Sequence record: NC_019407.1
Reading direction: 5' to 3' (one strand)
Length of the DNA stretch: 64,000 nucleotides
Shown piece by piece: positions 2,565-51,226 of this stretch; position 1 is the first letter of the stretch; every line of letters begins with the position of its first letter. The notes beneath the pieces were generated by a model, which saw only the letters and a list, made by a program, of their open reading frames with translations, had not been told where the DNA came from and searched no databases. Both the position numbers and the translations under genes were made by a program.

Positions 2565-3368
2565 ATGCTCTACACCCCCGCCGCCCGCCGCCTTCGCGGC
2601 TATCGCGAAACCGCCGCGAAGAACGCCGAAATTCACGCCCGCCCGCACATGGCCGGCAACGTCGCCGGCTACAACGAGTCGGTGTGGCCGACGACGGCGC
2701 TAGGCGTCGCCGCCAAGGCCGGCGCCTTCAAGCGCCCCGAAACCGCCGGCAACTGGTCGGAGGATCGCAAAGCCTATTACGCCCCCGCGTGGCCGGCCGG
2801 CTGGCGCGTGCTGGGCACGGCCGAAGAGGTCTGCCGCAAGGAAGGATCGCGCCGGGTGGAACATTCCGGATGGTACACGACGCCCGACGACTACAGCGCC
2901 ACGCTTTCGGGCTATGTGCTGCAAATCCCCGCCCGCGACGGGGTCGCCCAATACGTCGCCGGGACCGCCCATAGTGAATGGGACGGGGTGACCCTCTACC
3001 CCGCCGACCGCTACGACAACCCGCTTGACGCGGCGAGCGCCGCCGACCGTCACGCCGAACGCGACGCCGAAGAGGAACGCGAATATCAAACCGCGTGGCA
3101 AGCGGGCCAGCGCTACGCCGAACTCGGCGCCGAAGCCAAGGAGGCCCGCAAGGAAGCGCTGGCGATCCTCGCCGAACGCCGCAAGGTCAAGGGGCTGGAA
3201 ACCCCCGCCTTGTGCGGCGCGATCCGGGCGCAGGTCGAGGCCCTGCTAGGCCGGATCGAAGAGGCGCGCGAGGCCCGCGCCAAGCTCAAGGAAGGCGAGG
3301 ATTCGCGCCTCATGTTCTACCCCTCCGCCCGCCTCGTCGCGGCCTTCAATGACGGGGCGGCCGGGTGA
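2565..3368 (+). CDS. Hypothetical early protein (267 aa)
   Basis: SD GGAG, GC3-biased ORF. Confidence 0.8.
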   Translation: MLYTPAARRLRGYRETAAKNAEIHARPHMAGNVAGYNESVWPTTALGVAAKAGAFKRPETAGNWSEDRKAYYAPAWPAGWRVLGTAEEVCRKEGSRRVEHSGWYTTPDDYSATLSGYVLQIPARDGVAQYVAGTAHSEWDGVTLYPADRYDNPLDAASAADRHAERDAEEEREYQTAWQAGQRYAELGAEAKEARKEALAILAERRKVKGLETPALCGAIRAQVEALLGRIEEAREARAKLKEGEDSRLMFYPSARLVAAFNDGAAG

Positions 3369-48251: not shown

Positions 48252-48389
48252 ATGTTCGCCTTGTCGCATAACAGCCTGAGCACGAAAGCCGCCTCCCCGG
48301 CGTCGCTTTCGCTTGCCCTGCTGGCGACGGCCACGAAGCCCTCGACCAAGCCGACCACCTCGGCCTCGCACTCGACGGATCACCTCTAA
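48252..48389 (+). CDS. 45-aa attenuator leader peptide MFALSHNSLSTKAASPASLSLALLATATKPSTKPTTSASHSTDHL
   Basis: 41/45 residues are P, T, K, L, H, A or S, the amino acids of the downstream tRNAs. Confidence 0.85.
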   Translation: MFALSHNSLSTKAASPASLSLALLATATKPSTKPTTSASHSTDHL

Positions 48390-48666: not shown

Positions 48667-48739
48667 GCTGCTGCGCCTGGATCGGCGCCGGCCCCTTGGT
48701 ATGGGGAAGTAGAAGGTTCAATTCCTTCCGGCAGCACCA
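48667..48739 (+). tRNA. tRNA-Thr(GGT), atypical D-arm
   Basis: G1-C72/C2-G71, loop TT-GGT-AT, T-loop TTCAATT; C at position 8. Confidence 0.65.
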
Positions 48740-48744
48740 ACAAC

Positions 48745-48814
48745 GCCGATGCCTCTAGGAGGACACGTCTTTCGTAATGACGTCAGGTGGGTGCGATCCC
48801 CACTTTCGGCTCCA
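48745..48814 (+). tRNA. tRNA-Thr(CGT)-like, reduced D-arm, T-loop TGCGATC
   Basis: G1-C72/C2-G71, U73, loop TT-CGT-AA, CCA; 70 nt. Confidence 0.55.
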
Positions 48815-48849: not shown

Positions 48850-48936
48850 GGATGTGTCACCTCAGTGGCGAGAGGACCGGGCTCTTAATCCGGCAGCGAA
48901 AGCTCATCGTGGGTTCGAGTCCCACCACATCCTCCA
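48850..48936 (+). tRNA. tRNA-Lys(CTT) with long variable arm
   Basis: Loop CT-CTT-AA; V-arm AGC-GAAA-GCT; 87 nt. Confidence 0.85.
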
Positions 48937-48941
48937 ATAAT

Positions 48942-49031
48942 GCACGAGTGACCCGAGCGGCGAAGGGCGTCGACTTTTAATCGACTGGGCGTCCAGCCTC
49001 ACCGAGGGTTCGAGTCCCTCCTCGTGCTCCA
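48942..49031 (+). tRNA. tRNA-Lys(TTT) with long variable arm
   Basis: Loop CT-TTT-AA; 18-nt V region; class II-like D-arm; 90 nt. Confidence 0.85.
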
Positions 49032-49309: not shown

Positions 49310-49322
49310 AAGACGAGATCAT

Positions 49323-49394
49323 GCCGGCCGGCGCAGGCGCGCGGGGGAGGTTGTGTCCCTCCTTGGCTCAGTTCGATACTGAGGGTCGGTTCCA
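49323..49394 (+). tRNA. tRNA-His(GTG), minimal D-loop, no G-1
   Basis: Loop TT-GTG-TC; 7/5 stems; D-arm GCGC-AGGC-GCGC. Confidence 0.7.
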
Positions 49395-49399
49395 GTTAC

Positions 49400-49658: not shown

Positions 49659-49745
49659 GGTAGGTGGTTCCGGCCTGGGGCCGGACCCGGTTGCTAACCG
49701 GCCGGAGCCGCAAGGCTTGGGGTTCGATTCCTCCTCCTACCGCCA
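49659..49745 (+). tRNA. tRNA-Ser(GCT) with 8/4 fold and 6-7 bp D-stem
   Basis: 8-bp acceptor (one U.U), 4-bp T-stem, TCCGGC/GCCGGA D-stem, G73. Confidence 0.8.
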
Positions 49746-50057: not shown

Positions 50058-50156
50058 ATGAGCAAGACCTATCGTCAATTTGTGCGCCAGATTCAGGTCG
50101 TCCGGAATATCCGGGCGGGCCGCTCGCGCATGGCTGACGAAGGGTTCAGGGACTAG
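50058..50156 (+). CDS. Leaderless 32-aa attenuator peptide MSKTYRQFVRQIQVVRNIRAGRSRMADEGFRD
   Basis: ATG 7 nt after the -10; codons 5-19 are all Y/R/Q/F/V/I/N, matching the downstream tRNAs. Confidence 0.85.
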   Translation: MSKTYRQFVRQIQVVRNIRAGRSRMADEGFRD

Positions 50157-50258: not shown

Positions 50259-50343
50259 GGATGCTTAAAGCTGGAGGGCTCCAGCCGGGGACTGTAAATC
50301 CCCTCTCTTCGGAGGAGTGGTTCGATCCCACAAGCATCCACCA
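50259..50343 (+). tRNA. tRNA-Tyr(GTA) with 8/4 fold and 6-bp D-stem/4-nt D-loop
   Basis: GGATGCTT/AAGCATCC, GCTGGA-GGGC-TCCAGC, GGGGA-CTGTAAA-TCCCC, GTGG/CCAC, A73. Confidence 0.85.
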
Positions 50344-51024: not shown

Positions 51025-51050
51025 ACATGCCGGCCTCGGCCGGCACATGC

Positions 51051-51133
51051 GCCCTGGTAACCGAGGGGGATTACGAATCCCTTAGTCGTAGCAGGAGTTG
51101 AAAAGGGTGGTTCGAATCCACTCCAGGGTGCCA
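51051..51133 (+). tRNA. tRNA-Arg(ACG)-like lacking a D-arm, with 22-nt extra region
   Basis: 7-bp acceptor, only TAACCGA before the anticodon stem, loop TT-ACG-AA, normal T-arm, CCA. Confidence 0.65.
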
Positions 51134-51140
51134 AATTCAT

Positions 51141-51223
51141 AGCGCGCAGGCCGAGCAGGATCATCGTCAGGCGTCGCCCTCCGAAGGCGAAGAGGCCCGG
51201 TTCGAGTCCGGGGCGCGCTGCCA
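51141..51223 (+). tRNA. tRNA-Arg(CCG) with enlarged D-loop
   Basis: Loop CT-CCG-AA; 17-nt D-loop. Confidence 0.8.
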
Positions 51224-51226
51224 TCC

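Follow-up and report, generated by a model that had tools for sequence, protein, structure and literature searches.

The 64,000-nucleotide stretch of sequence record NC_019407.1 analysed here (the window) derives from a phiCbK-like Caulobacter phage, which is 98.8% identical to CcrMagneto over the stretch tested, with equal coordinates, and which carries at 47.0-51.3 kb of the window a cluster of 24 tRNA genes called by ARAGORN. Lysine anticodons (CUU and UUU) are found in two of the 24, and these are the sole tRNA-Lys genes of this phage. The pair sits between Pro/Thr and Leu tRNA genes, adjoining three tRNA-Leu genes, and no tRNA-related protein was found by Pfam within approximately 4 kb on either side of it. 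In CcrMagneto both genes are labelled plainly as tRNA-Lys in GenBank, and in the phiCbK genome paper the tRNAs were only counted, those for Thr and Tyr being given as absent. A first-pass annotation, made from the letters of the sequence alone, had proposed that both tRNA-Lys genes (87 and 90 nucleotides) are built on class II scaffolds with long variable arms and U73, and that their D arms resemble those of tRNA-Tyr or tRNA-Ser; the ARAGORN parse and covariation agree with the former proposal, and the D-arm sequences described below with the latter. The coordinates of these features are collected in Table 1.

In textbook accounts, long variable arms are restricted in bacteria to the tRNAs of leucine, serine, tyrosine and selenocysteine (Sec). 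A class I body is expected of tRNA-Lys, but both genes of this phage are long-armed: their variable regions of 15 nucleotides (CUU) and 18 nucleotides (UUU) contain stems of 3-4 base pairs (bp), as in class II tRNAs, in which this region exceeds 10 nucleotides (nt) and forms a stem-loop. Scores on the Rfam tRNA model (RF00005; gathering score 29) were 51.5 bits for tRNA-Lys(CUU) and 45.5 bits for tRNA-Lys(UUU). In the bracket parse of tRNA-Lys(CUU), the acceptor stem has 7 bp and is followed by three linker bases, a D stem of 4 bp whose 8-nt loop includes GG, a 5-bp anticodon stem with the loop CUCUUAA, the variable region (Table 1), and a 5-bp T stem with the loop UUCGAGU; the minimum-free-energy fold of this tRNA reproduces that five-helix cloverleaf exactly. 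The minimum-free-energy fold of tRNA-Lys(UUU) differs from the cloverleaf, so that its cloverleaf rests on covariation. Both tRNAs have the canonical 7/5 stem arrangement. The D-arm string quoted in the first-pass annotation, CCCGAGCGGCGAAGGG, occupies the D-arm interval of tRNA-Lys(UUU), and a variant of it, CCTCAGTGGCGAGAGG, is present in tRNA-Lys(CUU). The T arm of tRNA-Lys(UUU) is identical to that of tRNA-Leu(CAG) in the same cluster.

Table 1. Features of the two tRNA-Lys genes and of two small open reading frames in the tRNA cluster (positions in the window)
Feature	Position	Strand	Description	Evidence
tRNA-Lys(CUU)	48850..48936	+	87 nt, class II shape	ARAGORN, Rfam, minimum-free-energy fold, covariation
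Lys(CUU) acceptor stem	48850-48856 / 48926-48932	+		
Lys(CUU) D arm	48860-48875	+		
Lys(CUU) anticodon	48884-48886	+		
Lys(CUU) variable arm	48894..48908	+	C, 3-bp AGC/GCU stem, GAAA loop, unpaired CAUC	ARAGORN bracket parse
Lys(CUU) T arm	48909-48925	+		
Lys(CUU) U73	48933	+		
Lys(CUU) encoded CCA	48934-48936	+		
tRNA-Lys(UUU)	48942..49031	+	90 nt, class II shape	ARAGORN, Rfam, covariation
Lys(UUU) acceptor pair C2:G71		+		
Lys(UUU) D arm	48952-48967	+	CCC-GAGCGGCGAA-GGG	
Lys(UUU) anticodon	48976-48978	+		
Lys(UUU) variable arm	48986..49003	+	U, 4-bp GGGC/GCCU stem, 5-nt loop, unpaired CACC	Bracket parse, 15-sequence alignment
Lys(UUU) U73	49028	+		
Lys(UUU) CCA	49029-49031	+		
Leader-like open reading frame (CcrMagneto gp080)	48252..48389	+	45 codons; upstream of Pro-Thr-Lys-Leu-His-Ala-Ser tRNA sub-cluster	
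Second small open reading frame	50058-50156	+	17/32 residues F, V, I, Q, R (P = 3e-4); ahead of Phe-Val-Ile-Gln-Arg sub-cluster	

Homologues of the two genes are present at the equivalent site in the phages Rogue, BL10, CcrPW and Colossus, and also in the Brevundimonas phages Gurke, Marchewka and Bajun (unannotated in the latter two), and the lysine tRNAs are kept across Shapirovirus, Poindextervirus, Colossusvirus and the Brevundimonas phages at approximately 68% DNA identity. Pairing is kept in 94.4% of the cells of a 15-sequence alignment, two-sided change is seen at 20 of 25 pairs, the covariation score is 0.62 compared with approximately 0.07 for controls in which the pairing partners were slid, and none of 500 shuffles scored as high as observed. 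All five helices keep their pairing, and compensatory changes occur at all pairs of the variable arm; both sides of the variable-stem pairs of tRNA-Lys(CUU) are altered in 5 to 7 of the 15 homologues. The anticodon loops, CUCUUAA and CUUUUAA, are invariant. An equivalent outcome was obtained with 134 further distinct sequences from viral contigs, which were recruited, with rough E-values, by a covariance model built from the 15-sequence alignment. Because compensatory pairing is found in both the 15 and the 134 sequences, the variable arm is a selected structure, neither an intron nor noise. The case considered in the first-pass annotation, that the arm is spliced or trimmed out of the mature tRNA, is opposed by this covariation and, weakly, by contigs from four small RNA-library runs, in which the cluster of a close relative is present (presence only) at flat depth and without joints.

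The same architecture was sought among viral contigs by scanning IMG/VR for a lysine anticodon loop, a gap of 22-32 nt, a T loop and CCA, which matched 106 loci (CTT) and at least 120 loci (TTT). ARAGORN called 209 tRNAs of at least 82 nt with lysine anticodons, 172 of them distinct and nearly all from these matches; this sample was selected by pattern, and frequencies within it are not population estimates. The variable regions of the long lysine tRNAs are uniform: a stem of 3-4 bp, capped by a tetraloop, is preceded by 0-1 nt and followed by 3-4 unpaired nucleotides. Cultured phages with such genes include Rhodobacter phage RcXuper, with Lys-CTT and Lys-TTT of 88 nt each, and Xanthomonas phage X1, with a Lys-CTT of 76 nt beside a Lys-CTT of 89 nt. 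Long and short forms occur together in 85 of the 177 loci that bear a tRNA with a lysine anticodon, which argues that shape matters and not codon supply alone. Long arms were not confined to lysine: in viral contigs they were also found on tRNA-Asn (19 distinct) and tRNA-Thr (16), and on the tRNAs of Ile-UAU, Cys, Trp, Met and others. An 87-nt Asn(GTT) of the phiKZ-like Pseudomonas phage OMKO1 (contig L271, 1493-1579) has a D-arm/variable-arm module as in the long lysine tRNAs, and Xanthomonas phage X1 has, in addition to a standard 76-nt tRNA-Asn, an 86-nt Asn(GTT) (L269, 1761-1846) with a different D arm and a variable hairpin; the Asn discriminator, G73, is retained in the two long genes.

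Cellular genomes were scanned, one for each of 185,579 bacterial and archaeal species, with a stricter long-arm Lys-CTT pattern that demanded CTCTTAATC, GGTTCGANTCC and an encoded CCA and was biased to high-GC sequence. It matched 39 loci, approximately 20 of which have a genuine long Lys-CTT, all within dense arrays (10-35 tRNAs per 8 kb); approximately 17 of these genuine matches are in Alphaproteobacteria, mostly in metagenome-assembled genomes. No long Lys-CTT locus was found with this pattern among the Caulobacter and Brevundimonas genomes of the scan, a partial test of whether the host tRNA-Lys has the same fold. As judged by this restriction to phages and dense tRNA arrays, the long-arm tRNA-Lys belongs to phages and mobile elements and is not one of the housekeeping tRNAs.

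Other unusual tRNAs were noted in this material. A second non-canonical lysine family is represented by a CTT gene of BL10 (L005, ~2835-2920) and by TTT genes of Gurke (L003, ~3220-3305) and Marchewka (L007, ~2765-2850). In this family the acceptor stem has 8 bp and the T stem 4 bp, an additional segment precedes the D stem, which is long, the variable loop is short, and base 73 is U. Several tRNA-Leu genes in arrays with long tRNA-Lys, located in alphaproteobacterial metagenome-assembled genomes (L235, L237, L241, L242, L254, L257, L260, L266), are short, at 74-80 nt without a variable arm, as is one of Xanthomonas phage X1 (L269, 4524-4600); in such arrays Lys and Leu have effectively traded class I and class II shapes. 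Ile(TAT) genes of 90-97 nt, in IMG/VR contigs L105, L112, L131, L144, L175, L043 and others, conserve the variable-arm motif GCCAGATTAGCGC or a similar one. Trp(CCA) genes of 82-88 nt are present in Colossus (L006, 38-123), Bajun (L008, 1188-1275) and Marchewka (L007, 153-234), with variable-arm hairpins in Colossus and Bajun; the tRNA-Trp of the phage studied here is of the standard 76 nt.

The amino acid carried by the two tRNAs was considered from the geometry of the arm, the discriminator base and the acceptor stem. In viral contigs, the long lysine tRNAs have a 3-4 bp stem, a tetraloop and 3-4 unpaired 3' nucleotides; phage tRNA-Tyr has 3-4 bp with 3 unpaired nucleotides, phage tRNA-Ser 5-7 bp with 1 unpaired, and phage tRNA-Leu 1-2 unpaired. 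The long lysine arm is Tyr-like, not Ser-like or Leu-like. Serine identity depends on a Ser-type variable arm, so that the short Tyr-type arm would be a poor handle for seryl-tRNA synthetase (SerRS), and the pair C2:G71, which is a SerRS antideterminant in E. coli, is present in tRNA-Lys(UUU); tRNA-Lys(CUU), however, has G2:C71. A73 is crucial for the leucyl and tyrosyl synthetases (LeuRS and TyrRS) and is found in the tRNA-Leu genes and the unannotated tRNA-Tyr gene of the same phage; with U73 in both tRNA-Lys genes, the A73 needed by these two enzymes is gone. Serine identity is lacking in the arm (3-4 bp with 4 unpaired), in U73 where G73 is expected and, for tRNA-Lys(UUU), in C2:G71; bacterial tRNA-Tyr identity extends to the arm and U35, with neither A73 nor G34, position 34 being C or U; and bacterial tRNA-Leu identity is lacking in U73 and in a D loop of the GAGCGG/AGUGG type, compared with the GGAAnnGGnAGAC type of phage tRNA-Leu.

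The discriminator bases in viral contigs follow the amino acid of the anticodon: G73 in 19/19 long tRNA-Asn; U in 11 and A in 4 long tRNA-Thr; A in 112 and U in 57 long tRNA-Lys; A in 94 and U in 12 short tRNA-Lys; A in 51/52 tRNA-Tyr and 118/120 tRNA-Leu. U73 is commoner in long than in short phage tRNA-Lys (57/172 versus 12/108; Fisher p = 3e-5, for sequences that are phylogenetically non-independent), an enrichment that would fit a role in blocking TyrRS and LeuRS. A 516-kb contig (L084) encodes both a 77-nt class I Lys-CTT and a 91-nt long Lys-CTT, identical to each other in acceptor stem (GGACGTG/CACGTCC), T arm and U73; judging by this identity, the long form looks like a tRNA-Lys in which only the D arm and variable core have been swapped. 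The acceptor stem type GGAYGUG is common to the tRNA-Lys genes of this contig and the tRNA-Lys(CUU) of the Caulobacter phage.

The lysyl-tRNA synthetase (LysRS) of C. crescentus is a class I enzyme (LysRS-1), for which U35 and U36 dominate and A73 is marginal, and U35 and U36 are the main determinants for LysRS-2 also. Both of these bases are present in the 7-nt anticodon loop of each gene. The A73 of the rule for the class II LysRS of E. coli is replaced by U73 in both, as it is in the same 12/108 short phage tRNA-Lys. In the PhoH ATPase of this phage (Pfam, 185 bits), the Walker A lysine K78, together with K122 and K184, is encoded by AAG and aligns to lysine in PDB 3b85. Both genes most likely specify lysine-charged, lysine-decoding tRNAs. 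The first-pass annotation had left a choice between decoys or replacements for tRNA-Lys and mischarged tRNAs; replacement fits better by the discriminators, the paired genes of the 516-kb contig, the arm geometry and the AAG-encoded lysines, and mischarging, especially serylation of tRNA-Lys(CUU), is unlikely, and less likely than charging with lysine.

The leader-like open reading frame (ORF) upstream of the sub-cluster to which the lysine tRNAs belong has P, T, K, L, H, A or S at 41 of its 45 positions, where the background is 0.42 (binomial tail for 39 or more of 45, 7.6e-10). With the unannotated tRNAs for Thr, His and Ser included, these are exactly the amino acids of the downstream tRNAs. 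In 28 of the 45 cases the leader codon is exactly complementary to a downstream anticodon. Lysine codons of both kinds had been reported in this ORF by the first-pass annotation, and they are indeed there, as one rare AAA and two AAG; their match to the tRNAs suggests that the latter are meant to read lysine codons, a conclusion that the leader content supports. The ORF is conserved in Rogue, BL10 and the Brevundimonas phage Bajun, and in Bajun all three lysine codons are AAG and the only Lys tRNA found in the cluster is CTT. With the second small ORF (Table 1), it looks like an attenuator-type peptide sensing tRNA supply. AAA accounts for only 7 of 164 lysine codons in the large genes, yet the UUU tRNA is conserved, a pattern that mere supplementation of codons explains poorly.

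These observations could be brought together in a single reading, about as likely as not: that the two genes encode working tRNA-Lys species on a Tyr-like class II core, charged with lysine, whose shape is itself selected, likely against nucleases that attack tRNA-Lys. The class I core, with its 4-bp D stem and 5-nt variable loop, would have been replaced by one like that of bacterial tRNA-Tyr, consisting of a GAGYGG-type D arm, a short variable hairpin and four unpaired nucleotides, and the parts that specify lysine (the anticodon loops, a tRNA-Lys-type acceptor stem and the T arm) would have been retained. The host class I LysRS, reading U35 and U36 and largely indifferent to base 73, would charge both tRNAs with lysine, and both would read AAG and AAA as lysine. 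The shape would thereby keep lysine decoding in progress under attack on class I tRNA-Lys, either by tRNases that recognize the body of the tRNA in addition to its anticodon loop (candidates being PrrC, RloC, PARIS AriB and Schlafen-type enzymes) or by the phage itself acting on host tRNA; the class II core, by altering the D loop and adding an arm, would deny such nucleases their grip and leave the anticodon loop functional. The upstream leader ORF may plausibly sense the supply of the matching codons. Among the tRNAs attacked by PrrC, RloC, PARIS AriB and a bacterial Schlafen, tRNA-Lys is repeatedly the foremost, and phages are rescued from PARIS and from PrrC170 by tRNA-Lys genes of their own. 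AriB also cuts Thr and Asn tRNAs, and the D loop is read via its second subunit; Thr and Asn are among the isotypes most often long-armed in the contigs fetched. By analogy with these systems, resistance of the long-arm tRNA-Lys to PrrC and PARIS is plausible.

Several points weigh against selection of the shape by nucleases or against lysine charging. The motif read by AriB, U36-A-A-U-C, is unchanged in both genes, unlike the escape variant of T5, and to our knowledge no tRNA-Lys nuclease has been described in Caulobacter. The flat contig depth in RNA libraries proves neither transcription nor mature ends. The pairs G1:C72, G2:C71 and A3:U70 of tRNA-Lys(CUU) equal those of the Ser-GGA tRNA of the same phage, and one of its serine tRNAs has U73, so U73 does not exclude SerRS. 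In global alignments of masked tRNA bodies, the nearest neighbours fell into several classes (short Lys 38, Ser 29, long Thr 22, Gly 16, long Asn 14, Leu 12, Tyr 12). The idea that a class I LysRS tolerates the altered body suits Caulobacter, Rhodobacter and the alphaproteobacterial majority of the cellular matches; as a general rule it is weakened by Xanthomonas phage X1, the host of which should have a class II LysRS, and by the high-GC bias of the pattern used in the cellular scan. A single donor of the class II core was also looked for among the nearest classes and, these being mixed, none can be named.

Other explanations differ in what the tRNAs would carry or do. If an anticodon-blind SerRS (or, less likely, TyrRS or LeuRS) charged them, whether this were deliberate or tolerated, AAG and AAA would be read in part as serine, tyrosine or leucine, in parallel with the nev-tRNAs of nematodes or with allo-tRNAs. 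The class II shape, the likeness of the tRNA-Lys(CUU) acceptor (GGAUGU) to that of the phage Ser-GGA, the serine tRNA with U73 just mentioned, the occurrence of U73 in 17/111 phage tRNA-Ser and the U35 common to tRNA-Tyr would all suit such mischarging. It is nevertheless improbable, considering that the variable arm, with 3-4 bp and 4 unpaired nucleotides, resembles that of tRNA-Tyr and not that of tRNA-Ser (5-7 bp, 1 unpaired), that the A73 needed by LeuRS and TyrRS is missing, that tRNA-Lys(UUU) has the SerRS antideterminant, that the discriminators of long Asn, Thr and Lys tRNAs track the amino acid of the anticodon, that a class I tRNA-Lys with identical acceptor stem and T arm accompanies the long form in the 516-kb contig, and that AAG encodes the Walker A lysine and other conserved lysines. 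Somewhat more doubtful still is the view that the tRNAs are non-translating decoys, the lysine anticodon stem-loops of which would soak up or inhibit an anticodon nuclease without use on the ribosome. An unchanged anticodon loop and UAAUC motif would leave them recognizable as decoys, and long and short forms co-occur in many phages; but conservation of the acceptor stem, CCA, T loop, G18G19 and discriminator pattern is that of functional tRNAs, these are the only lysine tRNAs of this phage, and the leader ORF holds their codons.

A neutral accident, in which a tRNA gene was remoulded, or recombined with a class II tRNA gene beside it, and the product was tolerated by the host LysRS and merely added to the supply of Lys-tRNA, is unlikely but deserves more weight than the preceding two. 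The genes adjoin three tRNA-Leu genes, the T arm of tRNA-Lys(UUU) is that of tRNA-Leu(CAG), other tRNAs of the cluster have odd shapes, and the class I LysRS of the host might make no contact with the variable side; against these stand the compensatory changes that have held the variable-arm stem over deep divergence, the recurrence of the architecture in approximately 170 distinct phage lysine tRNAs and also in Asn and Thr, its coexistence with class I copies of equal anticodon, and the lack of examples outside dense tRNA arrays in the scanned cellular genomes. Hardly any weight can be given to artefact, that is, to pseudogenes or to loss of the variable-arm segment during maturation, whether by removal of an intron or by trimming. 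Neighbouring tRNAs are labelled 'pseudo' or 'OTHER' in some related records, but the Rfam scores are strong, covariation extends to every helix including the variable arm, the RNA-library contigs are jointless (weak evidence), and bacterial tRNA introns lie in the anticodon loop, not in the variable region.

The preferred reading, of lysine-charged tRNAs with a selected class II shape, has relatives among known systems. The replacement of targeted host tRNAs by phage tRNAs is known from T5 and PARIS, from PrrC170 and from mycobacteriophage variants. T5 tRNA-Lys(UUU), which escapes PARIS AriB, and the phage tRNA-Lys genes that rescue infection from PrrC170 are alike in that a phage tRNA decodes lysine while the tRNA-Lys of the host is destroyed; T5 escapes by point changes at positions 39/41 and U16 in a class I body, whereas both genes described here keep the motif on the anticodon side and are class II throughout the D arm and variable core. 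In mycobacteriophages, the divergence of tRNAs has likewise been read as evading tRNA-targeting defences (van den Berg et al. 2023, PMC10264068), but that study covers anticodon-loop bases only, and 'variable', 'D-arm' and 'structure' do not appear in its main text. Bacterial tRNA-Tyr shares the GAGCGG-type D arm, the 3-4 bp variable hairpin, the 3-4 unpaired 3' nucleotides and U35, but has A73 and the anticodon GUA where the phage tRNA-Lys have U73 and CUU or UUU. The nev-tRNAs reportedly retain leucine identity elements; many allo-tRNAs are said to bear non-Ser anticodons and to have 8/4 or 9/3 arrangements of acceptor and T stems, unlike both phage tRNA-Lys, which are 7/5 with a short Tyr-like arm; an 8/4-like arrangement is seen in other unannotated tRNAs of this cluster. 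According to PMC3333845, nev-tRNAs have a long variable arm under a class I anticodon (Gly/Ile) and decode an alternative code for leucine; in the phage tRNA-Lys, by contrast, acceptor and discriminator follow the anticodon and A73 is absent. The allo-tRNAs and other selC-like tRNAs, as described in PMC7609411, are bacterial, also have a long variable arm and share with tRNA-Sec a longer acceptor stem, anticodon stem and variable arm. These two groups are the closest structural analogues, and they are reported to follow the identity of the scaffold, not the anticodon.

The literature names only Leu, Ser and Tyr tRNAs as class II, and a full-text literature search found no description of a phage tRNA-Lys of class II shape. 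Nor was any account found there of a class I isoacceptor transferred to a class II body. The conserved and widespread class II tRNA-Lys of phages breaks the textbook restriction, as do the class II tRNAs for Asn and Thr. Should these tRNAs be charged with lysine, both classes of LysRS, EF-Tu and the ribosome would have to accept a class II tRNA-Lys, and body shape would be a second route, beyond point mutations in the anticodon loop, by which a phage tRNA may differ from that of the host, with a bearing on phage survival of PrrC, RloC, PARIS and Schlafen-type tRNases. Such tRNAs might also be natural, possibly orthogonal scaffolds for genetic-code engineering; if they were instead mischarged, they would constitute a natural, phage-driven ambiguity of sense codons. 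A wider generalization is possible but is advanced with considerable doubt: phages may widely rebuild nuclease-targeted tRNAs (Lys first, then Asn, Thr and Ile) on a Tyr-like class II core, keeping acceptor and anticodon identity, such that the products would be accepted by synthetase and ribosome and not by shape-reading tRNases or by the phage's own attack on host tRNA, with expression in the phiCbK group coupled to leader peptides whose codons would match exactly the tRNAs downstream and which would sense tRNA supply as an attenuator does.

The cluster contains further odd tRNA genes, all on the + strand. Two unannotated tRNA-like Thr genes, GGT (48667-48739) and CGT (48744-48814), have odd D arms and an encoded CCA; both were missed by ARAGORN and GenBank here, and a homologue of the GGT gene was called by ARAGORN in Rogue, BL10 and Bajun. 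An unannotated, non-canonical His(GTG) lies at ~49322-49395, with 71-nt homologues called by ARAGORN in Rogue (L004, 3395-3465) and BL10 (L005, 3377-3447), and two odd tRNA-like Arg genes, ACG (51050-51133) and CCG (51143-51224), are present, the BL10 homologue of the latter being annotated as an 80-nt Arg-CCG. In the unannotated Ser(GCT) (49659-49744) and Tyr(GTA) (50259-50343, with A73) genes, the acceptor stem is apparently of 8-9 bp, the D stem long (7 bp, with a 3-nt loop) and the T stem short, which recalls tRNA-Sec and allo-tRNAs; Ser(GCT) scored 44 bits on the Rfam tRNA-Sec model (threshold 47), and Tyr(GTA) 40.5 bits on model R1.

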